In this document: piece after piece, positions 14,525-47,855 of the stretch
How positions within the stretch are numbered: the first letter of the stretch is position 1
How the letters are laid out: every line of letters starts with the position of its first letter
Sequence record: PP496438.1
Reading direction: 5' to 3' (one strand)
Length of the DNA: 64,000 nucleotides
Notes under the pieces: generated by a model
The model's input: only the letters and a program-made list of their open reading frames with translations
Databases searched by the model: none
Told to the model about the DNA's origin: nothing
Position numbers and translations under genes: made by a program

Positions 14525-14545
14525 AGTGATTCCCTCGATGGAGTG

Positions 14546-14734
14546 TTAAGCCTGAACTTGTTCAGTAACCTTGCCCGGCAACGGGTAGGTCAACTGATCA
14601 CGATCCAGACGTTTCAGGACGCCGAGCGGCGGCAGGGTAACGGAATCTTTTCCCTCTGGACCATAGGCCAGCTGGATGGGGTGCTTCGCCGTCGAATACA
14701 GATTGACGTAAACTTTTTCTTGATCAGACATCAC
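14546..14734 (-). CDS. small hypothetical protein
   Basis: 62 aa with GGAG RBS, in the structural operon. Confidence 0.6.
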   Translation of the reverse strand: MMSDQEKVYVNLYSTAKHPIQLAYGPEGKDSVTLPPLGVLKRLDRDQLTYPLPGKVTEQVQA

Positions 14735-14749
14735 ATCGTCTCCTAACCG

Positions 14750-26013: not shown

Positions 26014-26338
26014 TGGACACCTCTTTGTTGGTCAGTATCCAGCCGATGCTCAGGACCAGACGTGGCCCATGGCACATAACCCTGTGTCGGTTGATGTCAG
26101 GACGGAACAGGTTGAAGCGACCCTTGATCTTGGCGTCCGGGCACTGGAACGCTGTAGTCGAACCTCGAAGCACGATGTTAAACCGCCAGTGTCTCTTGCC
26201 GGGAACTGGATCGGTATGCCATGAGATTCCTTGTTTGTCCATGAACCGGATCAGGTACAGGTCACCATATCGGCACTGGAACAGCAGCATCTTGAGGTAC
26301 TCCCCGCCACGACCTTGAACCCACGTGAACCATTTCAC
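25997..26338 (-). CDS. putative 2OG-Fe(II) oxygenase (small)
   Basis: WHTD...NRHRV...RLVLSIG gives an HxD...H...R arrangement. Confidence 0.55.
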   Translation of the reverse strand: MKWFTWVQGRGGEYLKMLLFQCRYGDLYLIRFMDKQGISWHTDPVPGKRHWRFNIVLRGSTTAFQCPDAKIKGRFNLFRPDINRHRVMCHGPRLVLSIGWILTNKEVSSGEAR

Positions 26339-26634
26339 GCTTCACGCTCGAACGACTGGGCCGGGCGAGTCTTAGGCAAGGATGTCCGCTTGCCCTTGGA
26401 CACACGGTTGATGAAGGTGGAGTAACGCACAGTACCCCTTGGGTCCCACCCCGCGTCCTTGGCCTTCTTGGTCACGGCACGGAACTCTTCCATTTCCTTT
26501 TCCGTAACCTCGACGTAGCCGTCGCGCTTGGCGTCACGAATGTTCTTCATATGGTCCTCACCGTCTTCAGGGCCGGACAACATTTGAACCATGCGGGTCT
26601 TGTGGTTGACGAAGTAACGTATCTTGGCGGGCAT
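26335..26634 (-). CDS. hypothetical protein (99 aa; start MPAKIRY)
   Basis: TAATG coupling with the upstream stop. Confidence 0.65.
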   Translation of the reverse strand: MPAKIRYFVNHKTRMVQMLSGPEDGEDHMKNIRDAKRDGYVEVTEKEMEEFRAVTKKAKDAGWDPRGTVRYSTFINRVSKGKRTSLPKTRPAQSFEREA

Positions 26635-26963
26635 TATTTGGTTTCTCCTGCTACTGACTCGATGGCAATGATCTCTGCACCGATGAGCAGGCTCTTCAGC
26701 CATTCCTCACCACGTTCTTCTTCGTCCTCGATTCGGACGTCTCCCATCATAATGAATGGGCAGTCATTGTGCGTCTCGAGCTTGTCAAAGACTGTGTTTA
26801 CGGCGGCGTCGATAACATCCCAGCCGGTGCAGTTGCCCCCGATCTTTACTTGCATCTCGGCGCGAAGCAATCCCGATGCGAAGGTCAATATAACGGTTTG
26901 GGTAACCTTGCCGCCGAACATTGCGAGAAAAGATCCGAGCTGTTCGTGATCATAGTTCAACAT
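26634..26963 (-). CDS. hypothetical protein
   Basis: 109 aa, TAATG-coupled. Confidence 0.65.
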   Translation of the reverse strand: MLNYDHEQLGSFLAMFGGKVTQTVILTFASGLLRAEMQVKIGGNCTGWDVIDAAVNTVFDKLETHNDCPFIMMGDVRIEDEEERGEEWLKSLLIGAEIIAIESVAGETK

Positions 26964-27787
26964 TAGTCTGTCCTCTTGATATTACCGGGTAGGGTGTAGG
27001 ACCACGGCTTGACATAATCTGCCGGGCGGGTGTAGCCTATCAGGTCTTCACCTTCGTAGGGGCCGTGCTTCCACGGGTCAGTAATCTCTGCGCGTTCAAA
27101 CCCGATGGACTCGTATAGCTTGATCGCACCTTCGTTGTCCGGGTCCACGTTGAGATGGTGGGGCAAACCTTGGGTCAGTTCCCAAGACAGCAGGAATTCC
27201 AGCATGCCTGTGGCAACCCCGCGACGGCGGTAGTCTGGATCAACACTGATCTCCTTGACGAAGCACGCGTCCACCTTCTCGCTGTCTTCGTCTTCTTTGA
27301 ACATCACAACGTCCATCAGCCCAACGACCTTGTTGTGCGCGGTCACGGTCACCCGTATCTCCTCCTGATCCGGTATATCTCCGCTCCAGCCATTCCATCT
27401 GGCCATGGTCACGGTGTACAGATTGTGTTGCCCGTCGTGCTTGGGACTGTGCACCTGATGCAGTGCCCGTGCATTCTTCAACTCCATCTTGGCGCCGGGC
27501 TTGATGACCGGGAATTCCAGATGCTTGATTTCCTTTTCAAGCATGATACCAATCTCGGAGTCTTTCGCTTTCTTGTCTTTGATGGTGGCTCGGTACACTG
27601 TGTCTGTGTCCGTGTTGTAAACACCCACCTTATCCGTCATCACCGTAATAGACGGCACAGCGGACCAGATGTACTCTTTGCAATGAGCTTTATCCGGGAA
27701 TGCGAAGCCAACGGACTTGCCGTCTACAATGACCAGCCACGGGCAATGGCCGGGATGCGGAAACCGAAGGATCTTTTGTGTGGGCAT
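26963..27787 (-). CDS. GNAT acetyltransferase (RimI-like C-terminal domain)
   Basis: ISVDPDYRRRGVATGML (motif A) and NEGAIKLYESIGF (motif B). Confidence 0.85.
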   Translation of the reverse strand: MPTQKILRFPHPGHCPWLVIVDGKSVGFAFPDKAHCKEYIWSAVPSITVMTDKVGVYNTDTDTVYRATIKDKKAKDSEIGIMLEKEIKHLEFPVIKPGAKMELKNARALHQVHSPKHDGQHNLYTVTMARWNGWSGDIPDQEEIRVTVTAHNKVVGLMDVVMFKEDEDSEKVDACFVKEISVDPDYRRRGVATGMLEFLLSWELTQGLPHHLNVDPDNEGAIKLYESIGFERAEITDPWKHGPYEGEDLIGYTRPADYVKPWSYTLPGNIKRTD

Positions 27788-33917: not shown

Positions 33918-35396
33918 ATGAAATCTGTAGCCGTTGACTACCAAAAGATAGCCAAGGAATGCCAGTGTACCGAGCTGCCTTCTAAGGTAAGAGTTACGCG
34001 TGCACGGGTCTATCCAAACTTGAGGACGTGCCTACTCTTCCTCAAGTACGATGCCAAAGGCGATCTGGTGCAAGCCGAGATCACTGCGCCGTACGACACT
34101 TCCACCGAGCCAAAGGTGCGTGTGCTCAAGCACCCGGACAAGAAGTCCGACTTCCTTTCATTATATAGAGCGCTGATCCGCCATCAGATCATACCCGAGT
34201 CTATTCCGAAGAAAGGTAACGGGATTGCACCGACGCTGGAGGTAATCGGCACACTGGTGAGCCTGCTGCCGGAACGGGATGTCGAAACCTTCCGAACCCT
34301 GACCCCGGCCATCCAGACTGGCAGCGTCATGTACGTCCCTCTGGTTACGTCCCGGCCAATGCCCATGGTGCAACACTGGATACCCGTTGACCAGCATTCA
34401 GAGCTGGGCATGATCGAGCTGGTCGATACGGATAGCAAGCCTTTCCTTAATCAGTGGGTCAACAGGTTGAGCAACACCGCCACCGGTTATGTGATCTACA
34501 CCCCGGAAGGCTCACACGGTCAGGAACTCGCCTGCTTCCGTGTGCCCAATGTGCAAGGAGAGGAACTGTGCGTGGTCAAGAAGGTGGACTTCACCCTTAC
34601 CGTTGCTCGCACCCTCAAGCCGGTACTGACCGTCTCCACCAAGAGTACGCGTGCCGTATCCCGCATTCCCCTACCCCACTATCTGATGCTGCGCAATCAC
34701 CACATCAAGGTGGGCACGGTTATTTCCCTGCGGCGTAACGACCGAGGTGGGTTGGTGTACCATGAGACGGTGGCAGAGGAAGGGATGACACCTCTGCCAC
34801 TGTGCCCACATTGCCATAGTGGATCTGTGCTGCGAAGTAGTAGCAATGACGTGTACTGCAATAACGATTCATGCCGAGGCCTAGCCATCGTGCGACTTCG
34901 CTACATCTTGAACAACAAGCTGGACGTCAAGTACCTGAGTCAGAACAAGGTGACGGCGTTGGTCAACGACAAGCAGGACCTGTTCAGCTTGCTCAAGACA
35001 CCGACTCACCTATTGCGGCACAGAGCGGGCTTCGGTGCACGTACGGTGGATGCGCTGGAAGAGAAGCTGAACACTATCGCCGGTCTTCCACTGCACACGC
35101 TGGCCGAGATGTCCTGCGCTTTCTACAACGTGGGTGTGCCCCCGCTGGATGAGATGGTGTTCAAGAAGATCTTTTCCGTGATGTCGCTTGACCACCTGAA
35201 AGCACTGCCCTCCACCGGTAAGATGTACAGCCAGTTGCTCGACATCGAAGGTATCCGCAACAACCGCGCAGTGGCTTTCCTCGCTGGTTGGCCTGCATTT
35301 CAACAGTGGATGATAGATCTTAACGCTGCCCTACAGTCTCGTAGCGCAATCTCCTCCACGGTAAATAACCCGAAACAAATTCGAGGTGTTAAATGA
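33918..35396 (+). CDS. degenerate NAD-ligase-like protein (OB, zinc finger, HhH; no catalytic KxDG)
   Basis: ACFRVP...VKKVDFTLTVARTLKPVL...VSRIPL...IKVGTVISLRR, CPHC...YCNNDSC and GFGARTVDAL follow the LigA C-terminal order; GGAG RBS before ATG 33918. Confidence 0.7.
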   Translation: MKSVAVDYQKIAKECQCTELPSKVRVTRARVYPNLRTCLLFLKYDAKGDLVQAEITAPYDTSTEPKVRVLKHPDKKSDFLSLYRALIRHQIIPESIPKKGNGIAPTLEVIGTLVSLLPERDVETFRTLTPAIQTGSVMYVPLVTSRPMPMVQHWIPVDQHSELGMIELVDTDSKPFLNQWVNRLSNTATGYVIYTPEGSHGQELACFRVPNVQGEELCVVKKVDFTLTVARTLKPVLTVSTKSTRAVSRIPLPHYLMLRNHHIKVGTVISLRRNDRGGLVYHETVAEEGMTPLPLCPHCHSGSVLRSSSNDVYCNNDSCRGLAIVRLRYILNNKLDVKYLSQNKVTALVNDKQDLFSLLKTPTHLLRHRAGFGARTVDALEEKLNTIAGLPLHTLAEMSCAFYNVGVPPLDEMVFKKIFSVMSLDHLKALPSTGKMYSQLLDIEGIRNNRAVAFLAGWPAFQQWMIDLNAALQSRSAISSTVNNPKQIRGVK

Positions 35397-36157
35397 ACAA
35401 TCAAAACAGAACTCGTATCGCTGTGCTTGTCGGCGGCGGTCTGGACTCACATGCGTACATGGTGTTGAAAGCCGACCAGCCTCAGACAGACTTCATTCAT
35501 GTGGACTACGGCCAGCGGGTTGCAGTAGCCGAGAGAAACGCCGTGTTGCAAATGGCTGAGAAGCTGGGCATTGCCCGCAGCCGGGTGTACACGCTGATCT
35601 GCAACAAGAAGAATCACATGCGCAAGGTCAATGACGGTGTGGGTGTGTTGTTTGGCACCGGCCCGGTCGAGATGGACAATGCGTTTGTTAAGGGGCGTAA
35701 CCTGTTCCTGATTCAGAAGGCCATCGAGCTGGGCTACGGTCACGTGCACCTGACGCTGACCCAAGAGCGTGGCCGGATGTTCCCCGATGCCGATCTGGCA
35801 TTCGTCCAGCTGGTGGACAACCTGATGCACCGCAGTTATGACGTGAGGGTGTCCGCACCCTACATCATGGAAGACAAACACCGGGTGATGTTCAAGGCGT
35901 ATCGGCACTGTCCCGAGTTCATCGATATGTCTTTCACGTGCTGGGTAGGTCCTTATGTGGAATGCGGAACGTGCCCGCACTGCTACAAGAAGGAAAAGAT
36001 TCGAGCCGAGATGATCGTTGAGAAGATTGAATACGATCTCAGCAAGGATGAACGTGAGGCGCAGTGGGAGCAAGTCAAGGCAGGCTACGGCGACGCGTTG
36101 AAGCCCGCTGAGACCATCAACATGAACATTCAGGTTGTTGACGGGGAAATGAAATGA
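35393..36157 (+). CDS. queC: QueC-like PP-loop ATPase (paralog 1)
   Basis: GGGLDS, DYGQR, KGRNL, FPDA and SFTCW...CGTCPHC zinc motif. Confidence 0.85.
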   Translation: MNNQNRTRIAVLVGGGLDSHAYMVLKADQPQTDFIHVDYGQRVAVAERNAVLQMAEKLGIARSRVYTLICNKKNHMRKVNDGVGVLFGTGPVEMDNAFVKGRNLFLIQKAIELGYGHVHLTLTQERGRMFPDADLAFVQLVDNLMHRSYDVRVSAPYIMEDKHRVMFKAYRHCPEFIDMSFTCWVGPYVECGTCPHCYKKEKIRAEMIVEKIEYDLSKDEREAQWEQVKAGYGDALKPAETINMNIQVVDGEMK

Positions 36158-36915
36158 ACAAGTTCTTAGGTTGGTTCAAGCGTCTGCTGGGTAAGGAGCA
36201 AAAGGCGGTAACGATGACAATGACCGACGCCAGTGGCAAGTTGGTCACCATTCATATACCTAAAGGTGCTGGGGTTGAGTACACCTTGTCGAAGTCGGGT
36301 GCCCACTTGAACGTCTCGGTCAAGGACGACATCTTCGTATTGAGCACGAACGGTGCTGGAGGCGGTGGGGGTGGCCGCGGTAGATCCAAACCTGGTGGCC
36401 CCGTCCATCCGCCCGTGCATCCGCGCCAAACCGTCCCAGTGGGTCCAGGCGCCCCGAACATGGGTTGCGCTGGGGACGCACCGAGTGGAGCAGGTGTAAC
36501 GTCGCCAGTGGGCGCTCAAGCTTCGTTCCCTATCGGTGCCCGAGCCACTGTTTCTGGTGGTGGCCGCGTTGGTGGTCTGGCGGGTGACGGACGGGAACAC
36601 AGAGAACTCGGAGGTGCACCCGGTCCCGGCGGAGATAGCTTCGTGCCCTCTCCAATCCGTAGTAGTGACCGAGCCTATCGCATCCGCGGTCTGTACTACG
36701 TCATTACGACTCGAAAGCTTACAGGTGAGGAGTACCCGACCCACGAACTTCTGCACTGGGGCCTTCGAGACATAGAACTCATGGGCAAGTTCTCAACGGT
36801 CCGTGAAGCTATCGACGAACTCAAGAGTAAGCTGGGTATCGTGTTAGACGATATTACGGACTATCAGGTTGACTCCATTCCCAAACGAATGTGCAAACCA
36901 CCGCACAAATCTTGA
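36154..36915 (+). CDS. Gly/Pro-rich hypothetical protein
   Basis: 253 aa, ATGA-coupled to QueC-1; GGGGGGRGRS run and a G/P-rich middle. Confidence 0.65.
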   Translation: MNKFLGWFKRLLGKEQKAVTMTMTDASGKLVTIHIPKGAGVEYTLSKSGAHLNVSVKDDIFVLSTNGAGGGGGGRGRSKPGGPVHPPVHPRQTVPVGPGAPNMGCAGDAPSGAGVTSPVGAQASFPIGARATVSGGGRVGGLAGDGREHRELGGAPGPGGDSFVPSPIRSSDRAYRIRGLYYVITTRKLTGEEYPTHELLHWGLRDIELMGKFSTVREAIDELKSKLGIVLDDITDYQVDSIPKRMCKPPHKS

Positions 36916-36918
36916 GCG

Positions 36919-36926
36919 GGTAAATG
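36919..36926 (+). promoter_or_regulatory. candidate phage promoter GGTAAATG
   Basis: Intergenic, 28 nt before QueC-2. Confidence 0.5.
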
Positions 36927-36953
36927 GCTCGCAACTAATCCGGAGACACTAGC

Positions 36954-37772
36954 ATGACCACTACACCCCCTAAGATTATCGTCGCATTCAGCGCTGGCAC
37001 AGATTCAACCACAGCGGCCTATTACTATCGCAAGCTCGGGTATCAGGTTACGCTGGCTGTCTTCGATGATGGCCCCTGCAACGATCCAAAGGATCCTCTG
37101 TACGATCCTAACAAGCCGGAAGATCTTACCAATTTCTCCGACGAGTTCTACGATTACGTACGAATCCATCAAGAACACACTGAGGGTCACCTGCAGTTCG
37201 ACTTTGTGGAGATCCGTTACCCACAGCTCCCGTTGTTGGAAGCCAACAAGACGGCTAAACCTGGTCGGGACAACGCGGCGGCAGCCGAAGCTGACGGCTT
37301 GGGGTTCTGGGTAGGCTTCAAAGGCCTGATGGCGATGATGCTGATGAGCCACGGCGCGGCCAACGGTTACGAGGCTGTAGTCTTCGGCCACATGCCGTAC
37401 AACAACCATTACGAAGATGAGCTGCCGCAGAACTTCGAGCTGCTGCGCCAGTACATGGTTACGGCCTATGGTAGCCGGGTGACTATTCCTCAGGTCTATC
37501 ACCCGTTCTACCGACCCAACTTTGATACCAAAGAAAAGGTTATCCAGCTGGCGTTGAACATCGGTGTGCCACTGGGAGATACTTATTCGTGCCGCCGAGG
37601 TGAAGCGGAAACCCGAGGCGTCCTCCTGCCACTTCTGCGCGGCGGTAAATCCAACTACGTGATGCCCACCTACCGCTGGAAGCATTGCGGAACGTGTGAG
37701 AACTGTGTAGAACGCAAGCGAGCTTTCGCCGCGCTGGGCATGAAAGACCCAGCCCCTTATATGGAACATTGA
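36954..37772 (+). CDS. QueC-like PP-loop ATPase (paralog 2)
   Basis: AFSAGTDS, TKEKVIQLALNIGVPLGDTYSC and CGTCENCVERKRAF. Confidence 0.85.
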   Translation: MTTTPPKIIVAFSAGTDSTTAAYYYRKLGYQVTLAVFDDGPCNDPKDPLYDPNKPEDLTNFSDEFYDYVRIHQEHTEGHLQFDFVEIRYPQLPLLEANKTAKPGRDNAAAAEADGLGFWVGFKGLMAMMLMSHGAANGYEAVVFGHMPYNNHYEDELPQNFELLRQYMVTAYGSRVTIPQVYHPFYRPNFDTKEKVIQLALNIGVPLGDTYSCRRGEAETRGVLLPLLRGGKSNYVMPTYRWKHCGTCENCVERKRAFAALGMKDPAPYMEH

Positions 37773-37773
37773 T

Positions 37774-38763
37774 ATGGCCCTTTCAATCTGGCCGCTGACC
37801 GAAGGTGAACTCGGTCAGGGCCTCGTCAACGAACTGAATCGTACCAGCAAGGCGCTGGTGAACCGGAGTATGTGGTCTTTGCCATTGCTCCGGCGTTTGT
37901 TTTATCGGCGCACCGAGATTGGTGTCCCGGAGCTACTCCACGTCTGTACCAGCATTCATCGGGGCAAGACTTACTTCTGCCTGTTGGTGAACTTCCGAGA
38001 CGTGGTGATGGGCAATCCCGACCAGTATGGCTGGGATCTGGCGGGCCGCTGGTTGTTCTACGACGTTGATCTGCTGGACACCCCGCCGTTCAAAGCGGTG
38101 AAGAAGTCCGTTGAGTCCCGTGCTACCAAGACCGAAGTGTCGTACGGTCAGGCTTTCCTCCCTTACGAGAAGAGCGATGAGGAATACGTCAAGTCCCTCA
38201 AGGGCAACTACAAGCCCCACATCTTCGGCGAGAAGTCCAAGCAGTATCGCATCTCATCGTACTTCGGACTGGCAGCGGTAGCCCCCTTCGCTCAAGCTCT
38301 GATGTGCTTCGGCATTCAGCGCGCCGAAAGGTTTATGGCCGAAGGGCAGAACGATGTCCTCCCCGAATTGTACGACCTGCCACTGCAACTGGCTGGTCTT
38401 GGTAACATCTCGAACACCCGCATCGGCTGTGTGACCATTGAAGTAGAAGGTACGATGGTAGGTGCTATCAGCATGTATGCTCAAGGTGCACTTGGTGATG
38501 CTGACATGCTGTATCTGCATGAAATCCTCATCGACCCGGACCCCAAGTGGAAGAGCTTGTCACTGGCTACTCTGCTGCACATTCATGCCGTCCTGTACTA
38601 TCGCCGATCCCTCCAGAAAGACGTAGTGTTCAATCTGGGCTACAACTTCGCCGACGGATATCAAGGTTACAAGGATGTCTTCCGGCCCAACGCCAATAGC
38701 TTCAACGTGTACACCGAGATGGACACCGAGCCCGGCGTACCACTGTCCTGTTTCAAGGGGTAA
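37774..38763 (+). CDS. GNAT/Fem-like (Acetyltransf_6-type) acyl/aminoacyl transferase
   Basis: LPYEKSDEEYVKSL...VEGTMVGAI...SLATLL...FNLG...GYKDVF pattern. Confidence 0.6.
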   Translation: MALSIWPLTEGELGQGLVNELNRTSKALVNRSMWSLPLLRRLFYRRTEIGVPELLHVCTSIHRGKTYFCLLVNFRDVVMGNPDQYGWDLAGRWLFYDVDLLDTPPFKAVKKSVESRATKTEVSYGQAFLPYEKSDEEYVKSLKGNYKPHIFGEKSKQYRISSYFGLAAVAPFAQALMCFGIQRAERFMAEGQNDVLPELYDLPLQLAGLGNISNTRIGCVTIEVEGTMVGAISMYAQGALGDADMLYLHEILIDPDPKWKSLSLATLLHIHAVLYYRRSLQKDVVFNLGYNFADGYQGYKDVFRPNANSFNVYTEMDTEPGVPLSCFKG

Positions 38764-38766
38764 GAC

Positions 38767-39768
38767 ATGTACACTCCGTATTCCCAAAACAGCCTTATGC
38801 AGTCGATCCCTCTGGATGACCAAGGTACATTCGCCCATCCACCGTACACGATGGAAGGAGAGTTCACCGACGTGTGGACGAATCCCAGCCTGTACGGGTT
38901 TGTTAGCTTGTTGAACGGTCAGAGCAATAGCCGGGCATATCGAGACTGGATGACCACCCACAATCTTCCAGCCCTGTTCCTCGGTCCGCACCATGAAGAC
39001 AACTTCTGGTTTGAATTCAGCACTGGTCTCGATTCCAACTGCACGCTGGATTACAACGAGATCAACGTCCAAGGCAACCTGCAGGACTTCCTTGGGAGAT
39101 TGACGTCATCTCGCCGTCGCTCCGTGCTCAAGGCAAAGGAAACGGATACAATGATCCACAAGGCAGGCTCGGTAGCCAACTTCAACCTGTATCATCCGGT
39201 AGAGGGTAGGCTGTATAGTCTGACCGTGATTCACGAACGCCGGGTGATGAAAGATATTTCCGAGTTTATCGAATCGAAACTCTGGAGTATGAAGCATACG
39301 CCTACTGACCTCACGTACGGTGCATTCACCACTCTGATGGACTACATCCGGTTGAAGCAGCGAGATGACACGCCGCTGGGCCACCGGTTGCGCAACGTAC
39401 AGCTCTTGGTTATCCGAGATGAACGCTCCGGGTTTATCGTGTCGGTACACCTGGTGGCGATCACCACGTTGAAAGATGAGTCCATGAACCCCATCAAGAC
39501 GTACATGCACTCCTTCGCACGCATCACTGTTCTCCCTGCACGCATCGCCTTACTTGCGTTGATCAAGGCGGTTCAAGAGTTAAACGTCACCAGTCAGTAT
39601 GCGTCCCGTGCACTGGCGAAGATCGACTATCTTGATGTGAGCAACGTGGTGCTGTCCGAGCGAGAGCAGTACAAGTCGGACTTCTTCACCGGCAAATGCC
39701 AAGTGCGTGCGTGGGCATCCCCGGCGCTGCTGGAACGGCAGTTACCTTTCGTCACGCCGATCCCGTAA
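38767..39768 (+). CDS. GNAT/Fem-like transferase
   Basis: QDFLGRLTSSRRRSVLKA and C-terminal YLDV...QYKSDF. Confidence 0.55.
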   Translation: MYTPYSQNSLMQSIPLDDQGTFAHPPYTMEGEFTDVWTNPSLYGFVSLLNGQSNSRAYRDWMTTHNLPALFLGPHHEDNFWFEFSTGLDSNCTLDYNEINVQGNLQDFLGRLTSSRRRSVLKAKETDTMIHKAGSVANFNLYHPVEGRLYSLTVIHERRVMKDISEFIESKLWSMKHTPTDLTYGAFTTLMDYIRLKQRDDTPLGHRLRNVQLLVIRDERSGFIVSVHLVAITTLKDESMNPIKTYMHSFARITVLPARIALLALIKAVQELNVTSQYASRALAKIDYLDVSNVVLSEREQYKSDFFTGKCQVRAWASPALLERQLPFVTPIP

Positions 39769-39771
39769 CTC

Positions 39772-39784
39772 TGTAAATGATGGG
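39772..39784 (+). promoter_or_regulatory. candidate phage promoter TGTAAATGATGGG
   Basis: Intergenic; 12-nt identity to the 8824-8835 site. Confidence 0.55.
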
Positions 39785-39822
39785 AACAGCCCCACCATCA
39801 CTTCATCTCTAGGGTAGTTCCC

Positions 39823-40875
39823 ATGCAAGACTTCGATAAGATAATGATCGATAGTAGTTTGACATCCAATCTGGTGTACGCAGGGTTGGGTAACTTGATC
39901 ACGCCCCGCGCACTTGACCTGCTGATCGAACATCAGGCTGCACTGGAAAACGTATACGCCAATCTGGAAACGGCCTATCAGATTACCCCACCCTTCCCCT
40001 GTGAAGCTGCATTCAATTCCCCTGACAAAGATCCTGTGCTGGTCGCCGACTATCTGAATGCTACTCCCGCCATCCGTTGCGGAGAGCTGTCTGGATTCGA
40101 GGCAAAGCCCGGCAGTTACTACCATGCGCCCGCCGCTGGTATCTCCCCGGAACATCGCATTGACGTACGTGGTATGTCTTTGCGTGAGTTCGACCACTAT
40201 CTGGTTGAGCGTAAGGAAGTATCCCGTATCACTACCAATCTGGTGGCCGACAAGTTCCGCTGTGAGACGCATGTGTACAAAGTGGATGAAGATCATATCC
40301 TGATCCATGACGCCGAACGAGTTGGGATCAGCCAGACGGACTTCCGCCGCATGTGGGCGCAGACCCGCCGCCGGGAAATCGCTGAAAACTATCTGCAGTA
40401 CATGCCCATCGAAGATTCCGCCAAGGATGATCAGGTGGTGCGACTGATCAACGAAGACGTAGCACGGGTGTTCGCCCAGAACGTCGACTACGACCGCATG
40501 ATTCCGCCCGAGCTGATCTTCGATGGTCAGGGCAAGCCGGTGCTGACCGTGCTGAAAGATTGCAACGCCAAGGTATTGGGCATTGGTGTGTACGTCATCT
40601 ACAAGTCAGCTGACCCAGAGCATGACAGCGAACTGCACTGGCGTGGCGCTTTCTACGATCACGAAGATCCTCGCGTAGCATCCATGGGCATTGAACACGC
40701 TCTGGTTGCCAGCGCACTGCACACAGCGTACGCCTGCAACGCGGTCCTCTATCTGACCAAGGCACCTAAGTCCGTGTGCGACGCATGGAAGACGGAAGTG
40801 CACCAAGGTTACGGTCTGGTCCGTAATGCGATGCCGGAACTGTCTGACACCCCTTACATTCTGGCTATCCAGTAA
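39823..40875 (+). CDS. GNAT-fold protein, ATE/Bpt-like aminoacyl transferase candidate
   Basis: C-terminal KVLGIGVY...GAFYD...SMGIEHAL resembles the FYDP...SLG motif of Arg/Leu-tRNA protein transferases. Confidence 0.45.
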   Translation: MQDFDKIMIDSSLTSNLVYAGLGNLITPRALDLLIEHQAALENVYANLETAYQITPPFPCEAAFNSPDKDPVLVADYLNATPAIRCGELSGFEAKPGSYYHAPAAGISPEHRIDVRGMSLREFDHYLVERKEVSRITTNLVADKFRCETHVYKVDEDHILIHDAERVGISQTDFRRMWAQTRRREIAENYLQYMPIEDSAKDDQVVRLINEDVARVFAQNVDYDRMIPPELIFDGQGKPVLTVLKDCNAKVLGIGVYVIYKSADPEHDSELHWRGAFYDHEDPRVASMGIEHALVASALHTAYACNAVLYLTKAPKSVCDAWKTEVHQGYGLVRNAMPELSDTPYILAIQ

Positions 40876-40908
40876 ATAGCCGGTAACTCCATCCATTGAG
40901 GTACTTCC

Positions 40909-42993
40909 ATGAAATCCGTGAACCCCATCTTCAAACACGTTCCCCAGTTCGACTGGCCTGTCATTCCCCGTGCGCAGTGGGAAGAGATCATCAAGGGAAA
41001 AGAGCATGTGATGTTCGACTCCTTCTCGCAGCTCGCTCAGGTGCTGGCTATCCCGGTGAGCAGTTACCAGTTCTACTTCGAAGATGGGTCCACGTTGTTC
41101 GCCGGTCCCGAAGCAACCTTCACCGCCGCCCCCTATCCGTTGTATCAGGATCTGGAATTCGTCCTGACCCCGGATGAGACGTTGGTGCCGGGTCTTGCAC
41201 TGGATACCAAACCGTGGGGCCTGTACACCGACGAATGGGTGGACAACTACGAAGGTGCGGACAAGGAAGACATCGGCAACAAGACCGGGTTCGAATTCAT
41301 TCCGCTGTCGGACGCTTTGAAACTGGTGGTCCTCAACACGGAGACCATGCAGCTCCAGTACACTGCAATCGAGAGCTTCACGTACGACGGCGTGACTTAC
41401 GTATACCTGCTGGCCGATGGCGTGTGCTGGGTACTGGCGGGCAAGTCCGGTGGTCTGGTTGCCAGCGAGCATGACAAAGGCGCGGCGTTCATCATGGTGT
41501 CCCATCCCGAGTTCGCCGGGTGCAGCGTAGACAACATGTACCCAAGTGAGTTCGGTGAAGCGGAAGCGACGTTCTACGTTCAAGACGAGGAACACAATTA
41601 CCTGGACGCGGCTAACCGCATCTTCGAGGAAGCCAAGGACGTAGGCGCTGGCACGTTCCTGACCATTGAGACCGGTGATGGATTGCCGACCGCGCTGGCG
41701 TACAACCTGCGGTACAGTGATGTGGCCCACGTTAATCTGCCGATGCACAACATCCACCAGTTCACTTCTCTTCACGTACGACTGGGTGAGACGCCTAACT
41801 TCTCCGAGGCCCCGGAAGCGTGCCGCATGAAAGAGGTGATGGAGTATCTGGCGGACCCTGAGTCCCCGGTAGATCATTACTGGTCGGCCATCATGGTACT
41901 GGAGAAGAACTTCCCCGGTTTCGCCGACGCCCTGAAAGACTCCAGTGTCCCGACCCGTGACATCGTGCACTCCAAACAGGCGTTCAGCTTGGAGATCGAT
42001 CGCCAGTTCGGCAAGGAAGTGGCAAGCAAGATCGGGCTGAACACTGGCGTATTCGCTCAAGTGAAAGACCGTGATGAATGGCTGGTACGCAAACACGAGT
42101 TCCCTACCGATAAGGTGGCCGTCAAGTACAACACCAAACACTTCATCGGCATCTTCGACAAGGACGAGGTATCGAAGTCCATCAACATGTGGCTGGCTGG
42201 TCAACCCGGAGAGTCGCTGATGATCGAAGAGTACTTCGGTGAGGGCAATCAGGAATTCAACCTGTGCTACGTGATCAACGAAGATTTCGTGCAGCCGACG
42301 CTGTTCCTGTGCGAAGTCAACAAGATCCTCAGCAATGACACCGGCGGCAAAGGTGGCAACACGCTGGCCTGCCATGATGCTCGTATTAACAAGTACCCTG
42401 AGTTCTTCGAGCCGGTCAATAATGCGCTTGCTAACCTGCATGAGCACGTGGAAGGTGTGAAGGGCTGGGTTGACCTGAGCTTCATGGTTCGCGACGGTAT
42501 CCCATACTTCACAGAGTGGTGCATTCGCATCGGCTGCTCCAACAACGCCACCATCGTGCGCCAGATGGAGACCCCGCTCGACGTCCTGTTGACTAACGTG
42601 GTCAACAAGGTGCATACCGAGCTGTCTTGGAAACACTCCATGTCTGTCAGCGTGGACATCTACAGCATGCCGCTATCCGCAGGCAACGACGCCAACATGC
42701 AGTTCACCGACTCGCTGACCACTCCGGTAGAGATGGTGTCCCCGCTCAATCTGGAACTGGCGGCGGAGAGTTTCTTCGACCCGATTGATTCGGCCTGGAA
42801 CGCGGTGTACGACGGCTACATCGTCGAGGCGTATAATCGCTATGGCACCGTCTCGGGGTACTCCACCAACTGGAACTTCGCCTGCAATGCGGCGTATAAT
42901 CACTTGAAAGATCAGTCGGTGTTGTACGGAGCGTACCGCGAAGCGCCTGCCCACCATGACCCACTGACTCTGTTCCCTTTCCTCAAGGCGTAA
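40909..42993 (+). CDS. PurD (GAR synthetase)-like ATP-grasp ligase with ~270-aa N-terminal extension
   Basis: SKQAFSLEIDRQFGKE, VAVK, MIEEYF, NDTGGKGGN, GWVDLSFM and FTEWCIRIG follow the PurD motif order. Confidence 0.75.
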   Translation: MKSVNPIFKHVPQFDWPVIPRAQWEEIIKGKEHVMFDSFSQLAQVLAIPVSSYQFYFEDGSTLFAGPEATFTAAPYPLYQDLEFVLTPDETLVPGLALDTKPWGLYTDEWVDNYEGADKEDIGNKTGFEFIPLSDALKLVVLNTETMQLQYTAIESFTYDGVTYVYLLADGVCWVLAGKSGGLVASEHDKGAAFIMVSHPEFAGCSVDNMYPSEFGEAEATFYVQDEEHNYLDAANRIFEEAKDVGAGTFLTIETGDGLPTALAYNLRYSDVAHVNLPMHNIHQFTSLHVRLGETPNFSEAPEACRMKEVMEYLADPESPVDHYWSAIMVLEKNFPGFADALKDSSVPTRDIVHSKQAFSLEIDRQFGKEVASKIGLNTGVFAQVKDRDEWLVRKHEFPTDKVAVKYNTKHFIGIFDKDEVSKSINMWLAGQPGESLMIEEYFGEGNQEFNLCYVINEDFVQPTLFLCEVNKILSNDTGGKGGNTLACHDARINKYPEFFEPVNNALANLHEHVEGVKGWVDLSFMVRDGIPYFTEWCIRIGCSNNATIVRQMETPLDVLLTNVVNKVHTELSWKHSMSVSVDIYSMPLSAGNDANMQFTDSLTTPVEMVSPLNLELAAESFFDPIDSAWNAVYDGYIVEAYNRYGTVSGYSTNWNFACNAAYNHLKDQSVLYGAYREAPAHHDPLTLFPFLKA

Positions 42994-42996
42994 TCC

Positions 42997-44157
42997 ATGA
43001 GCACTCCATTCCAAGAGTTCACCCTAGAGGGGTGGATTCAACATATGAATCAGGATCAAATCTGGAAGCGGTACGCCAACGATCATCCTAACAGGGTTGA
43101 GTTCAGCCCTGTTTGGCGTGACGAGATGTATCGGTTGATGGTACAGTTCAAAGAGCTGCTGCCGATGTCGTTCTCCAATCCGGTGTACGGCTTCACCGAA
43201 GGCTATCTGGAAGGGTTCGGACTCCAGCCTTTCTACGGCGATGATCCTTTCAATCCGATGGTTCAGCCTCTTAGCCATCCTCTGGTTCACGTGGGCTTCC
43301 CACTCACACTGGACGAGATCGTAGCGAGCGTGCGGGACTGGCAGTCCCTGAGCGATCACCTGGGGCGTCCGCAACTGGTCGATACATTCGAGCCGGTTTC
43401 ACTGCTAGCGCGCAACCTGTACGAGCCTAACGCGCTGCTGGCCGTACGGAACAAGGAAGAGATCGTGATGAACGGGGGCACGCCCGCGAACTACTTCCTC
43501 TGGCTGAATAGCCCGGTCACCGAACTCAAAGACGACTTCGACGTTTATCTGGCCAGCCTGACCAAGAAGCGCCGCTACAAAGTGAAGCAGGCGTTGGCGA
43601 CGGTAGGCACCGAAGAGAATCCCCGGATCAGCGTCAGCACCGGGTCTCGTTTCGGCGAAGGGCTGTTGTCCGATCAGGTGGACAGCATCCTTGCTACGTT
43701 CGAAGATCCAGTGGACATCGAGTGCATGCTTCTTCAGTTGCTATTCGGGGTTGCAACCTGCAATACCCATCCGCATCTTGTCGATCTGGTGTGTGCAGAC
43801 CAGCAGTTGGGGATCTTCATCAAGCGTAACGGCCACACGATGAACTTCCTCTACAACCGCGACCCGGACAACCGCGCTGATTCAGGCATAAACCTGCTTA
43901 CCCAGTACGTGCGCCATCTGCACATGAACCGACCGGAAGGTGTTATGTACGTGGACCCGACATGCCGATATCGGCCTGACGAGGACAGTATGAACACCTA
44001 CAAGCGGGTGATCACCAACGAGAACCGGTATCACCCAATGCCGTTCGTCTCGGCTGACCCTGCGCACATCGAAGGTGTGCTTACCCCGGCGTTCATTGCA
44101 GGCCATTGGCAGATGTCGGCGTCCAACGGACCGGCCAACCCCGAGATGATGGAGTAA
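42997..44157 (+). CDS. GNAT/Fem-like transferase
   Basis: FDVYLASLTKKRRYKVKQA, GINLL and TYKRV. Confidence 0.65.
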   Translation: MSTPFQEFTLEGWIQHMNQDQIWKRYANDHPNRVEFSPVWRDEMYRLMVQFKELLPMSFSNPVYGFTEGYLEGFGLQPFYGDDPFNPMVQPLSHPLVHVGFPLTLDEIVASVRDWQSLSDHLGRPQLVDTFEPVSLLARNLYEPNALLAVRNKEEIVMNGGTPANYFLWLNSPVTELKDDFDVYLASLTKKRRYKVKQALATVGTEENPRISVSTGSRFGEGLLSDQVDSILATFEDPVDIECMLLQLLFGVATCNTHPHLVDLVCADQQLGIFIKRNGHTMNFLYNRDPDNRADSGINLLTQYVRHLHMNRPEGVMYVDPTCRYRPDEDSMNTYKRVITNENRYHPMPFVSADPAHIEGVLTPAFIAGHWQMSASNGPANPEMME

Positions 44158-44159
44158 CC

Positions 44160-45107
44160 ATGGCAAAGTCCAAAATGAGACGGTTGGCGATCAACCACAT
44201 CTATGACTTCTACCCGTTGTATCAGGTGATGTACGGGCGTGGCATGGAGACCAAAGCGTTCGAGGTATCCAAGTTCGCCAAGATGGTTATGGACTTCGAA
44301 GCCTCGACCAGTACTCGCCGGAAGTGGGACGTGCTGGAGCCCTTCAGCGGTATCAGTGAACACGAACACTTCTTCGCTGCGACCGGCCTGAACATCGAGC
44401 ACTACACCGGCATGGACATTGTGGTTCCAGATGGGGCCACGAACGTCATTCAAGGGGACATCATCACCGACACCCTTCCGTTTCACGTCAACGCAGTGTT
44501 CGCCTTCTACTACAGCTTGCAGAATGTACGGGACGCGGCGACCGGCATGCACACGCGGGCCAAGCTGGTGGAGTTCTTCGACAACATCATTGGTCATCTG
44601 CAAGTAAATGCGAACAAGAGCCGTATGCCCGCAGTGTTCGCGTTCCACCTTGACCAGCCTGAAGATCCTAATTACTATCTGACGTCCCGTGCCGACGTTG
44701 GAGGTGAACAGTCATGGACTGCACCCGCGTGTGGTCTGCTCGGGCAGTGGGTCAAGTGCAAGCCGACTGACACTCTGGAAGTCAAGTGCAATCTGGATAC
44801 CTGGTACAACCGCGTGCAGTGCACAGCGTATGATCAGGCAGAGGACATTCAGATTCTGGTAAATGGGAAAGTAACCGCTGTCGTAGACATCGAGCAGCCG
44901 TTCACCCATCGGGTCTGGACCGAGCATGAGGTCATCGATATCCTGCGGGGTCTGGACTACAATCTGCACTTCCACATGTACAACGGCACCCTCTCCAATT
45001 ACGACTTCTTGATGACCCGGCTGGACGACAAGCCCGTTCCCGGCGATGAAGAGTCTAATACTAATCAGATGACAACTGATATGTTGGTTGTCGTTAATCC
45101 GAGGTAA
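44160..45107 (+). CDS. class I SAM-dependent methyltransferase
   Basis: VLEPFSG (motif I variant), GMDI, IQGDI, NAVFAFYYSL; GGAG RBS before ATG 44160. Confidence 0.6.
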   Translation: MAKSKMRRLAINHIYDFYPLYQVMYGRGMETKAFEVSKFAKMVMDFEASTSTRRKWDVLEPFSGISEHEHFFAATGLNIEHYTGMDIVVPDGATNVIQGDIITDTLPFHVNAVFAFYYSLQNVRDAATGMHTRAKLVEFFDNIIGHLQVNANKSRMPAVFAFHLDQPEDPNYYLTSRADVGGEQSWTAPACGLLGQWVKCKPTDTLEVKCNLDTWYNRVQCTAYDQAEDIQILVNGKVTAVVDIEQPFTHRVWTEHEVIDILRGLDYNLHFHMYNGTLSNYDFLMTRLDDKPVPGDEESNTNQMTTDMLVVVNPR

Positions 45108-45109
45108 GC

Positions 45110-46027
45110 ATGGCTAAGCCCAAGGTTCCAACCAAGACGATCCCCACGTTGTACCAAGACTGGGGATTGTACAGCGCCATCTGCGAACTGCCGCAGGAGA
45201 CGATGCTGATGATGTCGCGCTTCGTGGCAGACCGAACCATTGAGCACGCTGAGCGTATCGATCAGGTAATGGTCGAGATCATGGAACCCTTCAGCGGCCC
45301 AATCCCGTATTACGAGCCAGACATCCGCAGCTTCCTGACCCGCGCTAAGCTTGATCTGTACACGTACGATCACGTCGAATACCTGGATCACGGCAAACTG
45401 TCGGAAGACAACGGCATCATCATCGGTGACATTACCACCATCGATCTGAAGCAGAAGTACGACGTCATCTACGGCAGTTACGGCAGCTTGGCCTGCCTGC
45501 TGCTGGATCAGACGCACAACAAAGCGTACGAAAAGTCGCACGCGGCGCTGGTCAACATCCGCAACCACCTGAAACCCAACGGCATCTTCATCCTGAACGC
45601 CAACGGGTCCAGTGAGAGCCTACTGAACAACCTGCTGAACTCCGATGAGCCGGATCAGGAGATTCGCGTTCGTCCGGGATCGCAGCTTGGCAAGAAGTTC
45701 GGCATCAAGCCGGACAGCAACGCGCTGCTTCGCTTCACCTATCACGTGGAGTACGACCGACGCACCACCTGCACCATGTGCCACTACAGCGATATGGTGC
45801 TGTCTGTAAATGGGGTTGACATCCAGCGCTGGGAGGTGGAATCCCCGACGTATCTTGCTCCGCTGGACGAACCCGAACTAATTCGAATGGCAGGTATGGC
45901 TGGTTTCAATCTGGACAACACTGAGTTCTACGGATTGGACACCACCGGTTATCCTGCCTTCTTCAAAATGGATACGGTCTGCGACGGGTCATGGTCACCC
46001 GCCGAGTTCGTAGTCTTTCGCACCTAA
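45110..46027 (+). CDS. class I SAM-dependent methyltransferase
   Basis: MEPFSG, IGDI, YDVIYGSYGSL and HLKPNGIFIL. Confidence 0.8.
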   Translation: MAKPKVPTKTIPTLYQDWGLYSAICELPQETMLMMSRFVADRTIEHAERIDQVMVEIMEPFSGPIPYYEPDIRSFLTRAKLDLYTYDHVEYLDHGKLSEDNGIIIGDITTIDLKQKYDVIYGSYGSLACLLLDQTHNKAYEKSHAALVNIRNHLKPNGIFILNANGSSESLLNNLLNSDEPDQEIRVRPGSQLGKKFGIKPDSNALLRFTYHVEYDRRTTCTMCHYSDMVLSVNGVDIQRWEVESPTYLAPLDEPELIRMAGMAGFNLDNTEFYGLDTTGYPAFFKMDTVCDGSWSPAEFVVFRT

Positions 46028-46037
46028 CGAGGTTCCT

Positions 46038-47273
46038 ATGAGCGTTATCATCCCCACCGTAGCGATGGAGAGTGGTCAGCCAGACATGATCATTCAAGGC
46101 TGTTCCACTGGTCGCGTCTCTATGGCCGAGCCTAACGAGAGCGCCAAACCCAAGTCTTCCAAGAAGCTGTACGAACGTGAAGACCTGATGGCGTACGACA
46201 GCGAGTCGGAGCACTGGCAGAAGCAGTTGGCCCGCCGCTACGCTCACCATGGTGAGATGGTCGGTGTGTTGAACAACGTCGAGGTGGTGCCGGAAGCCAC
46301 CTACCAGAACTTCGACATGAAGATCACTCCGTACACCGCGCAGTTGATGGATCAGAACGACCCCAACTGCCCGATTCGTCTGCAGTACATGCCGACCAAC
46401 AAAGAGCTGGAGTCGATTCAGCGTGAAGAGACCATGCACAACGAGCTGGGCGAGGAAGAGGACACCGTCCCCGGTACCTCGGTCGTGCACCGCTACCCGC
46501 GCCGCGTCTTGTTCCTGACCACCACCCAGTGCGCTAGCTTCTGCCGTTACTGCACCCGTGCACGCATCGTCTCTCACGGCGGTGAAGCGGCTATCACCAA
46601 GAAGCACCTGGACGCCAGCATCGACTACATCGCCTCGAACAAGGACATAGAAGACGTGTTGCTGTCCGGCGGTGACCCGTTCATCCTGCCAGACAACAAG
46701 CTCGACGAGATCCTCGGTCGTATCCGCGCCGAAGCACCTCACGTTCGCTTCCTGCGTATTGGTAGCCGACTGCCGGTACAGATGCCGACTCGTATCACTC
46801 CAGAGCTGTGCGAGATTCTGGAACGCCACAACGTCAACATGGTCAACATCCATGTGAACCACCCGAAAGAGGTCACCCCACTGCTGGCCTCCCGGATGAA
46901 GATGTTGCGCAAAGCTGGCGTGATGATCGGTAATCAGGCGGTCCTCCTGAAAGGCGTGAACGACTCCATCGAGGTGATGACCGAGCTGTGCTTGCGCATG
47001 GTCGAGATGGGTGTGCGTCCGTACTACGTCTACTCCAACGATCCGGTTGCGCAGGCCGCACACTTCACCGTCTCGCTCCGTGATATGCTGGACATCAACG
47101 AAGGCATGCGTGGCTTCCTGTCCGGCCCGGCAATGCCCACCTTCGTGGTGGACGGCGTGGGTGGCTTGGGCAAGATGCCCGTGCAGAAAGAGTATGTGAC
47201 AGTACTGGGGAGTGGTAAGATCTGGGCCACCAACTTCGAAGGAATGACCACTCGCATGCCCCATCTGGAGTAA
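46038..47273 (+). CDS. kamA: lysine 2,3-aminomutase (KamA/EpmB family radical SAM)
   Basis: HRYPRRVL, CASFCRYC (CxxxCxxC), SGGDPF, HVNHPKE, NQAVLLKGVND, PYY and GGLGKMP (PLP lysine). Confidence 0.93.
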   Translation: MSVIIPTVAMESGQPDMIIQGCSTGRVSMAEPNESAKPKSSKKLYEREDLMAYDSESEHWQKQLARRYAHHGEMVGVLNNVEVVPEATYQNFDMKITPYTAQLMDQNDPNCPIRLQYMPTNKELESIQREETMHNELGEEEDTVPGTSVVHRYPRRVLFLTTTQCASFCRYCTRARIVSHGGEAAITKKHLDASIDYIASNKDIEDVLLSGGDPFILPDNKLDEILGRIRAEAPHVRFLRIGSRLPVQMPTRITPELCEILERHNVNMVNIHVNHPKEVTPLLASRMKMLRKAGVMIGNQAVLLKGVNDSIEVMTELCLRMVEMGVRPYYVYSNDPVAQAAHFTVSLRDMLDINEGMRGFLSGPAMPTFVVDGVGGLGKMPVQKEYVTVLGSGKIWATNFEGMTTRMPHLE

Positions 47274-47423: not shown

Positions 47424-47855
47424 ATGAGCTTCTCCGTAACCGTAGCTGCACAGACCATCGCTGCCCCCGAGTCGCTGGGTAGCCCGAAAGGCATCAGCGT
47501 CCTCGAAGCCAACGAAGGCTTTGCTGTCATCGAATTCCAACGTCCTCGCGCCTCGAAGCGTGACCAGATCGCCGTCCCTCGCGTCCAGATCCTTTCCCTG
47601 AGCCACGGCAGCGCCGACGGCGACAGCGGTTACCTGATCGCTCAAGGCATGGCCGGTGTGGCCGACGAATTCGAAGCCGCAAGCTTCACCATCGAAGGCA
47701 ACGTTGCCACTTTCGTGACCGCTGAAGGCGCCACCATCGAAACCGACGCACGTCTGACCCGTATCCTCGCTTACGGCGTGGAAGAGGGAGAAAACAGCCT
47801 GCTGGGTAAGCCGGAAAAGAAAGTAAAACCGAAAGCAAGCACCAAGAAGAAGTAA
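47424..47855 (+). CDS. abundant hypothetical protein with Lys-rich tail
   Basis: Strong codon bias, GAGG RBS, own terminator. Confidence 0.75.
   Translation: MSFSVTVAAQTIAAPESLGSPKGISVLEANEGFAVIEFQRPRASKRDQIAVPRVQILSLSHGSADGDSGYLIAQGMAGVADEFEAASFTIEGNVATFVTAEGATIETDARLTRILAYGVEEGENSLLGKPEKKVKPKASTKKK

Follow-up and report, generated by a model that had tools for sequence, protein, structure and literature searches.

What would a relative of the purine-biosynthesis enzyme PurD be doing in a bacteriophage with no pur gene annotated in its 202-kb genome? The question is raised by a gene at 40909..42993 (+ strand) of a 64,000-nucleotide stretch of sequence record PP496438.1, which we call the window (window position = record position minus 124000). 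Its open reading frame has an ATG start with GAGG 9 nt upstream, and its 694-residue product is identical (100%) to SKa4_00195, annotated 'hypothetical protein', of Pseudomonas phage vB_PpuM-SKa-4, a 202-kb (jumbo) myovirus of P. putida. An earlier sequence-only reading of this stretch had taken the product for a repurposed PurD-like ATP-grasp ligase with no other pur genes in its company, and on both counts our analysis agrees with it. Our analysis further indicates that the gene encodes a PurD-fold ATP-grasp ligase of a new family, and it leads us to a proposal that could well go either way: judged from sequence and gene context, the enzyme may be an amide ligase that uses ATP to couple β-lysine to a 7-deazaguanine intermediate, toward a new hypermodified DNA base.

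The ligase and its relation to PurD

By sequence the resemblance to PurD is remote. Against Pfam GARS_A the protein reaches E=0.031 (14.5 bits against a 27-bit cut-off), and the Pfam scan gives no GARS_N or GARS_C match. The NCBIfam purD model (TIGR00877) aligns residues 354-585 with model positions 94-338 at E=1.8e-7 and 30.3 bits, against a cut-off of 288 bits, and a sequence search of the PDB returns the PurD 1vkz at E=0.02. By predicted fold the resemblance is strong. In an AlphaFold2 model built on a 36-sequence alignment, residues 222-694 mostly have a predicted local distance difference test score (pLDDT) >90, with residues 1-217 poor, and the first 15 Foldseek matches of this model in the PDB are all PurDs, that is, glycinamide ribonucleotide (GAR) synthetases, with E from 7e-19 to 3e-17 and template-modelling (TM) scores of 0.67-0.77 normalised by the target over ~450 aligned columns. 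Biotin carboxylases and L-amino-acid ligases come next, about five orders of magnitude weaker. These matches suggest that, in the predicted structure, all four PurD domains (N, B, A and C) are present. We assign this PurD-like core to residues 246-694 (41644..42990, +), preceded in the model by a family-specific helix at residues 225-245 (41581-41643, +). The sequence-only reading had the resemblance of the C-terminal part right and its size too small, at ~420 residues for a core of ~450-470.

What separates the protein from PurD is that all four PurD signature motifs are replaced, and that the replacements are consistent throughout its family. The GxGGREHA motif of the PurD N domain gives way to an ETGDGLPTAL-like sequence. 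The PurD glycine-rich loop KADGLAAGKGV becomes VKYNxxHFIG across the family and VKYNTKHFIG in our protein, where YNTKHFIG (residues 407-414; 42127..42150, +) stands for the loop directly after the invariant ATP-grasp Lys406 and is 4 residues shorter. DxKRxxDxDxGPNTGGMGA becomes ExN(K/R)LxxNxxGGKxGxxxAxH, here ExNKxxxNDTGGKGGN, with NDTGGKGGN (residues 476-484; 42334..42360, +) in place of DxDxGPNTGGMGA. Both YNTKHFIG and NDTGGKGGN had been singled out as altered motifs from the letters, and both are present. Finally, E(F/Y)NxRxGDPE becomes TEW(M/C)xRxGCSN, here TEWCIRIGCSN (residues 535-545; 42511..42543, +), in which Glu536 and Arg540 are kept and the Asn is lost.

The residues that are kept say something about chemistry. 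In the 36-sequence alignment, Glu362, Lys406, Gly479, Gly519 and Arg540 are common to the family and the PurDs, and Glu440, Gly483, Glu536 and Arg644 are nearly so; Lys406, Glu440, Glu536 and Arg540, which correspond to the phosphate-binding Lys, the hinge Glu, the Mg-binding Glu and the Arg, are invariant or at least 90% conserved. The shared Lys, Glu, Gly and Arg positions are those expected for the handling of ATP and an acyl phosphate in ATP-grasp enzymes, and the conserved Lys, Glu and Arg imply that the chemistry is presumably that of PurD, in which a carboxylate is converted to an acyl phosphate and then to an amide. A second set, Arg365, Lys481, His489, Trp520, Asp522 and Asn545, is specific to the family and invariant or nearly so at 20-25% overall identity. 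In a maximum-likelihood tree, a 100/100 branch with a length of 2.0 substitutions per site divides 28 family members from 8 PurDs (the sample, with no outgroup), so that the phylogeny against PurD which the sequence-only reading had proposed as a test sets the family apart from these PurDs.

Since the family cut-offs, the signature motifs and the tree placement all fail, the protein is, as far as sequence can tell, a PurD-derived ATP-grasp enzyme and not a PurD. The family either descends from PurD or is sister to it, with a rebuilt substrate site. Given the pattern of conserved residues, we have little doubt that the protein is an active amide ligase of a non-PurD kind.

How widespread is this family? 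A profile search of 1.84 billion representative proteins gave 43 matches, of which ~30, ranging from 416 to 744 residues, are the ligase's own family; all of these come from phages or metagenomes, and no member has been named. The weakest matches, P0033-P0041, are canonical PurDs with GARS_N, GARS_A and GARS_C. A scan of IMG/VR with patterns of the family found no relatives, and a metagenome scan added one further short locus only. Among isolates, the gene is found in 8 sister phages of SKa-4 at 92-99.9% identity, and the only others with a relative are the Vibrio coralliilyticus phages GR7B and GR11A (36-38% identity over residues 227-687); in every case the annotation is 'hypothetical protein'. 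The ligase and its neighbours have no match in PHROGs, and the ligase has none in PADLOC. One metagenomic locus (L010) carries two ligase paralogues in tandem, at 192-1628 and 1562-2548, which suggests two successive ligation steps in some relatives. A protein of 4307 residues, P0032, gives ten matches to ligase profile positions 496-542 (E=4e-10) and is apparently a repeat protein with a short segment in common.

The linked aminomutase

If the enzyme is not PurD, which carboxylate would it activate? The ligase gene belongs to a co-directional string of genes at 33918-47273, with junctions of -4, -4, 38, 1, 3, 54, 33, 3, 2, 2 and 10 nt, that lies between helicase and topoisomerase II genes. 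The last gene of this string (46038..47273, +) encodes a KamA-family aminomutase of the lysine 2,3-aminomutase type, dependent on radical S-adenosylmethionine (SAM) and pyridoxal phosphate (PLP). Its scores are 320 bits on the model for lysine 2,3-aminomutase (AblA), 303 on that for glutamate 2,3-aminomutase, 293 on that for arginine 2,3-aminomutase and 223 on the EpmB model; it passes the KamA subfamily cut-off (275 against 199 bits) and not the AblA equivalog cut-off (320 against 525). Aligned with the C. subterminale enzyme 2A5H (273 bits), it keeps CxxxCxxC and the equivalents of Arg134, Asp293, Asp330 and Lys337. We take Arg134 to bind the carboxylate, Asp293 and Asp330 to hold the lysine ε-ammonium, and Lys337 to be the PLP lysine, and the retention of all four suggests that lysine, giving β-lysine, is the most likely substrate of the aminomutase.

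The linkage of the two genes extends well beyond SKa-4. A KamA-like gene stands in the same string as the ligase in all eight loci with at least ~9 kb of context, namely the window, GR11A (L002), L007, L009, L011, L015, L018 and L022, the contigs of P0013, P0019, P0024 and P0031 being too short for gene context and lying outside this count. It is kept even in L022, which represents a distant clade with a ligase only 23% identical to ours. This linkage across loci shows that the module is retained over deep divergence. In L011 both subunits of a lysine 5,6-aminomutase (Lys-AminoMut_A and the B12-binding subunit; 13090-15377) follow directly after the ligase, which points again to lysine-derived diamino acids, in this phage possibly 3,5-diaminohexanoate. 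L007, L011, L018 and L022 have GNAT genes flanking the ligase. We consider it probable that the ligase uses the product of the aminomutase; the suggestion of the sequence-only reading that the acid might be β-lysine fits both the eight-locus linkage and the residues shared with 2A5H, which would make β-lysine the candidate acid.

Some of these loci have further genes at their edges. A Tad2-like (anti-Thoeris) gene lies directly downstream of the ligase in L009 (5335-5607), an Amidoligase_2 gene directly downstream of the ligase in L016, and the topoisomerase II genes of L011 bear intein/Hint signatures.

Deazaguanine genes in the operon and the genome

A candidate for the second substrate is suggested by two QueC-like PP-loop enzymes encoded in the same string. 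The first (35393..36157, +; 68.9 bits) is near-canonical: measured against the canonical QueC motif set of PMC13082051, it has GGGLDS, YGQx6E, VKGRN, FPDA and Cx7CxxCxxC, and with its motifs near intact it probably still recognises 7-carboxy-7-deazaguanine. The second (36954..37772, +) is divergent; the canonical substrate motifs are not present in it, and it keeps only the PP-loop (SAGTDS) and a long-spaced zinc motif (C...CGTCENC). QueC-like genes stand in the ligase string in six loci of one phage lineage, namely the window, GR11A, L009 (three copies), L011, L016 and L022, and QatC-like matches are seen at the C-terminus of some QueC-like relatives. Two members of the QueC family, Cap9 and QatC, are reported to attach carboxy-deazaguanine to the N-terminal amine of a protein (PMC13082051; 10.1101/2025.04.06.647259), which provides a precedent for a QueC fold using an amine other than ammonia.

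In the genome as a whole we find, by profile and motif matches, a toolkit for the synthesis and insertion of deazaguanine: FolE, QueD-like, QueE-like, QueC-like and DpdA-like proteins. A Pfam scan of 43 unannotated SKa-4 proteins yielded a TGT-family and a PTPS-family protein, both encoded outside the window. The first, SKa4_00105, annotated 'hypothetical', is DpdA-like (PP496438.1 record 81638-83008; L004 31641-33017, - strand). It scores 33.2 bits on Pfam TGT against a cut-off of 26.3, aligns with tgt_general over residues 11-303, has DSGGFQ and CxCxxC motifs and a basic Lys/Arg/Ser-rich C-terminal tail of ~55 residues, and is 52% identical to the 'TGT domain' proteins of GR7B and GR11A; its gene adjoins that of a phage sigma factor in both SKa-4 and GR11A. 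The second, SKa4_00018 (400 residues; record 17747-18946, L003), is QueD-like, with 34.2 bits on PTPS, and is split by a long acidic insert into an N-terminal match (residues 34-74) and a C-terminal one (residues 305-395). Annotations of the SKa4_00018 homologues in vibriophages of the KVP40 and nt-1 types disagree, reading PTPS-like, QueD or even QueF. A QueE-like radical-SAM gene (Fer4_12, 30.6 bits) lies in the final 16 kb of the genome, together with FolE (129 bits); homologues of the QueE-like protein are annotated QueE in phages known to carry deazaguanines, among them nt-1, Campylobacter phages and haloviruses. The QueD-like and QueE-like assignments are, by these scores, weaker than that of FolE. 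The DpdA-like, QueD-like and QueE-like proteins are all common to SKa-4 and the ligase-bearing Vibrio phages GR7B and GR11A. DpdA is the signature protein of such systems, since it is encoded by all phages whose DNA is known to contain a 7-deazaguanine, and dPreQ1 also occurs in tailored forms, methyl and formyl (Cui et al., 10.1101/2023.04.13.536721).

The sequence-only reading had suggested, by analogy with PurZ, that a repurposed purine enzyme might make an unusual nucleotide. An unusual nucleobase does appear plausible; what does not stand is the analogy with an enzyme of the nucleotide pool, since the two QueC-like genes of the operon and the FolE, QueD-like, QueE-like and DpdA-like genes of the genome make the tailoring of 7-deazaguanine the closest analogy.

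Proposed function and alternative explanations

How could these enzymes work together? In the mechanism that we propose, the ligase would phosphorylate the carboxylate of β-lysine (of 3,5-diaminohexanoate in one relative) with ATP, and an amide would then be formed with an amine on a 7-deazaguanine-derived intermediate. The simplest pairing would keep the polarity of PurD, with a small amino acid being activated and a nucleobase-derived amine attacking; this version would place β-lysine on aminomethyl-deazaguanine and would need the QueF of the host. Alternatively, a QueC-like enzyme could join the amine of β-lysine to 7-carboxy-7-deazaguanine, and the ligase would extend or cap the free β-lysine carboxylate. 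The methyltransferase-like and GNAT/FemAB-like neighbours would tailor the remaining amines, and the DpdA-like transglycosylase would insert the finished base into phage DNA, where it would give protection from host nucleases. Both substrates, the order of the steps and the DNA destination are what we infer from the genes. The fullest version of the proposal, in which the guanine of the phage is replaced by a 7-deazaguanine whose side chain derives from β-lysine, is N-methylated and may be aminoacylated further, made by the PurD-derived ligase and repurposed QueC enzymes, we advance tentatively, as a possibility on the doubtful side. We found no description of this gene combination in the literature searched, and neither a survey of jumbo phages (PMC7824862) nor one of the QueC family (PMC13082051) mentions it.

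Several points weigh against the proposal. The modified base itself we infer here from genes alone. No QueF is annotated and no QueF NADPH motif was found in any of the six frames of the genome, so preQ1, the obvious alkylamine acceptor, would have to come from the host. The near-canonical QueC may be just the preQ0 synthase of the phage, encoded beside an unrelated pathway. Topoisomerase II genes follow the module in five loci, and this conservation indicates one syntenic phage lineage, so that the co-occurrences are not independent and partly inherited gene order is possible. The loss of the PurD Mg-binding Asn and the shortening of the glycine-rich ATP loop mean that catalytic details may differ. 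Finally, the ligase and its neighbours are acidic (isoelectric points, pI, of 4.6-5.2), which argues against direct action on DNA, and fits work on a cationic free base before insertion by DpdA.

The explanation that best survives beside a modified DNA base is that the product of the operon is a small molecule or short peptide containing β-lysine, with a destination other than DNA, the ATP-grasp enzyme forming one of its amide bonds. Such a product could serve as a packaging polycation or a compatible solute, could act as an anti-defence or antibiotic-like metabolite, or could be a free peptidyl-nucleobase, with the QueC-like proteins acting as generic adenylating amide synthetases. The acidity of most proteins in the string is as expected for the handling of cationic small molecules, the set of GNAT, N-methyltransferase-like, aminomutase and ATP-grasp enzymes resembles the logic of natural products, an Amidoligase_2 gene lies beside one relative, and the DpdA-like, FolE, QueD-like and QueE-like genes lie at scattered sites a long way from the operon. 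However, the first QueC-like protein keeps nearly all of the residues that recognise 7-carboxy-7-deazaguanine and the operon is placed, at each locus, among replication genes (helicase and topoisomerase II); moreover, a free-base product could still be inserted by DpdA, so that this explanation overlaps with our own. We regard it as unlikely, if still worth serious weight.

By analogy with the action of EpmA and EpmB on elongation factor P, and with Cap9 and QatC, one might instead imagine that a phage or host protein is β-lysylated or carboxy-deazaguanylated, with the ATP-grasp enzyme as a peptide-type ligase. QueC-family enzymes do attach carboxy-deazaguanine to protein N-termini (PMC13082051), the aminomutase reaches its 223 bits on the EpmB model, QatC-like C-terminal matches occur among the QueC-like relatives, and the N-terminal extensions of the ligases, which vary among family members, could be protein-docking modules. 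Yet the neighbourhood of the ligase holds no conserved protein that is a candidate substrate, the fold is nearest to the small-molecule enzyme PurD rather than to RimK or R2K peptide ligases, and the phage has a full toolkit for base synthesis and DNA insertion. Together these make the modification of a protein improbable.

Could the ligase have lost its catalytic activity and serve as a scaffold organising its operon partners? Its shortened loop, its missing Mg-binding Asn and its large non-catalytic extension would suit such a role. However, Lys406, Glu536, Arg540 and the family-specific residues are near-invariant at 20-25% identity, which is the pattern of an active site, and PurK- and PurT-type ATP-grasp enzymes also lack the PurD Mg-binding Asn, so we consider a scaffold very improbable. 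The view of the gene as a canonical PurD auxiliary metabolic gene we reject on cut-offs, motifs, tree and gene context, and a genuine but divergent GAR synthetase boosting purine synthesis is hardly credible either: it would account for the four-domain PurD fold and the catalytic Lys, Glu and Arg, but not for 30 bits against 288, the missing GARS_N and GARS_C matches, the loss of GGREHA (on the phosphoribosylamine side) and the other signature motifs, the 100/100 branch, the absence of other annotated pur genes and the invariable linkage to an aminomutase.

The N-terminal extension and other genes of the string

The N-terminal extension of the ligase comprises residues 1-224 (40909..41580, +), or 245 residues counted to the first strand of the PurD N domain. 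It is acidic and aromatic-rich (pI 4.19, D+E 14.7%, F+W+Y 14.7%), as the sequence-only reading had described it, and shorter than the ~270 residues given there. The AlphaFold2 model has it at low confidence (pLDDT <50), and its scores of ~0.45 in a comparison with Atlas are meaningless. It has no detectable homologue outside P0001-P0003 and nine P. putida phages, and for the N-terminal extensions there is no Pfam match in any family member and no PHROG match. Nor is this domain a feature of the family, as many members (416-480 residues) do without an extension and other subclades have extensions of 150-320 residues that are unrelated to it and to one another. We regard it as a lineage-specific accessory module, with a role perhaps in docking or substrate presentation. 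Between SKa-4 and phage Peetri, the ratio of nonsynonymous to synonymous substitution rates (dN/dS) is 0.11 for the extension and 0.13 for the PurD-like core, which indicates that both are coding and constrained by purifying selection. An open frame of 676 codons runs antisense to the gene (40606-42636, -), and similar long antisense frames occur elsewhere in the window, whose G+C content is 55%; we reject it as a gene, since it mirrors a conserved sense frame as is seen in G+C-rich coding DNA.

The protein encoded 3 nt downstream of the ligase (42997..44157, +; 386 residues) is kept in L002, L006, L009 and L015. It has an Atlas score of 0.94 for Acetyltransf_6 / FemAB-like, one relative matches PF13480 at E=0.021, and a profile of its family against the PDB found nothing; as a lead, it probably has an Acetyltransf_6 / FemAB-like GNAT fold. 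The 333-residue product of 38767..39768 (+) is weakly like this family, with which it shares L-x-x-L-[ST]-x-x-R-R (profile comparison marginal, E 0.06); the same comparisons with the genes at 37774 and 39823 were negative. Between the gene for the 386-residue protein and that for the aminomutase lie two genes for paralogous class-I SAM methyltransferase-like proteins (44160..45107 and 45110..46027, both +), which show weak but consistent matches to amine N-methyltransferases, the second of them to DesVI-type, CypM and daptide methyltransferases. Just after the aminomutase, a 143-residue protein (47424..47855, +) is kept in L002, L007, L009 and L015.

The string opens with a gene (33918..35396, +) that overlaps the next by 4 nt and encodes 492 residues (pI 9.3) with a LigA-like region of OB, zinc-finger and helix-hairpin-helix (HhH) character (TIGR00575 E=1e-6; an Atlas lead) and no recognisable adenylation domain; the product may bind DNA as a partner of the pathway, or it may be a specialised ligase. 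A full NAD-dependent ligase is encoded elsewhere in SKa-4, and the GR11A homologue of the first gene, annotated 'ligA', is also upstream of QueC genes. Three further proteins have no function assigned: a basic one of 253 residues (36154..36915, +), one of 329 residues with a relative in L011 (37774..38763, +) and an acidic one of 350 residues (39823..40875, +); PDB sequence searches with the first and the third gave noise only.

Two further observations concern nucleotide metabolism and DNA. The annotated thymidylate synthase of SKa-4 (record 25970-27124, L003; Thymidylat_synt E=4e-54) has 384 residues, which is long for ThyA, and near it are genes for dihydrofolate reductase, a deoxynucleoside monophosphate phosphatase and a nucleoside triphosphate pyrophosphohydrolase. 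The description of the P. putida phage collection, which does not discuss DNA modification, reports that a standard phage DNA kit recovered extremely little DNA from these G3 jumbo phages, so that another type of column had to be used (10.1101/2024.03.26.586772), an anecdotal observation that is compatible with unusual DNA chemistry.

Comparison with known systems and significance

The ligase resembles PurD in its four-domain ATP-grasp architecture and in the Lys, Glu and Arg residues of its ATP and acyl-phosphate site, and PurD is its best match both in structure and in sequence; it differs in failing every family threshold, in having its own motifs, its own clade and an extra ~225 residues at the N-terminus, and in being always linked to a lysine aminomutase and found without purine-pathway context. 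The phage 7-deazaguanine systems, built on DpdA with FolE, QueD, QueE and QueC, have their counterparts in the DpdA-like, FolE, QueD-like, QueE-like and QueC-like genes of SKa-4, and decoration of the C7 side chain has precedent in DpdM and DpdN, which give mdPreQ1 and fdPreQ1. However, no known system of this kind has an ATP-grasp ligase, a KamA aminomutase or FemAB-like proteins, an amino-acid-bearing deazaguanine has not been reported in DNA, no QueF was found in SKa-4, and its queC genes are grouped with the new enzymes and not with queD and queE. Cap9 and QatC resemble the second QueC-like protein of SKa-4, which is similarly divergent with a long-spaced zinc motif, and they show that 7-carboxy-7-deazaguanine can be coupled on a QueC scaffold to amines besides ammonia; their targets are proteins and their role is bacterial defence, whereas the SKa-4 genes are phage-borne and lie beside an amino-acid mutase, with no partner protein evident.

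A parallel in enzyme logic comes from peptidyl nucleosides such as blasticidin S, in which a KamA-type mutase makes a β-amino acid, an ATP-grasp enzyme links it as an amide to an amine derived from a nucleoside, and the later steps are N-methylation and aminoacyl transfer; in the blasticidin S pathway these roles belong to the arginine 2,3-aminomutase BlsG, the ATP-grasp ligase BlsI, the N-methyltransferase BlsL and the tRNA-dependent aminoacyl transferase BlsK. The likeness to the phage operon is one of enzyme function, and such pathways are Streptomyces antibiotic clusters acting on cytosine nucleosides, not phage deazaguanine genes. In phage thymidine hypermodification, amino acids are attached to 5-hydroxymethyldeoxyuridine (5-hmdU) by displacement of pyrophosphate, and phage M6 uses a radical-SAM isomerase. 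There too a phage base receives amino-acid-derived groups with a radical-SAM enzyme involved, but the base, the attachment chemistry and the enzymes differ, and we reject this pathway for SKa-4, where no 5-hmdU kinase and no pyrophosphorylase signature (aGPT-Pplase) was seen.

The combination described here would be a 7-deazaguanine modification system with a new ATP-grasp family at its centre. Isolates exist both of the P. putida phages (CEPEST collection) and of the Vibrio phages GR7B and GR11A, and they can be propagated on laboratory strains, which opens the question to a direct test. Phage DNA is known to contain eight 7-deazaguanine derivatives, all with small C7 substituents. If our proposal is true, SKa-4 and its relatives would provide the first amino-acid- or peptide-conjugated deazapurine in any genome, and a cationic, β-lysine-bearing base would widen natural DNA chemistry and give phages a new route to evade restriction and possibly CRISPR. 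An unnamed ATP-grasp family and several orphan families of roughly 200-kb phages would also gain a function, and this would be the second case, after PurZ, of an enzyme of purine biosynthesis recruited for genome chemistry.

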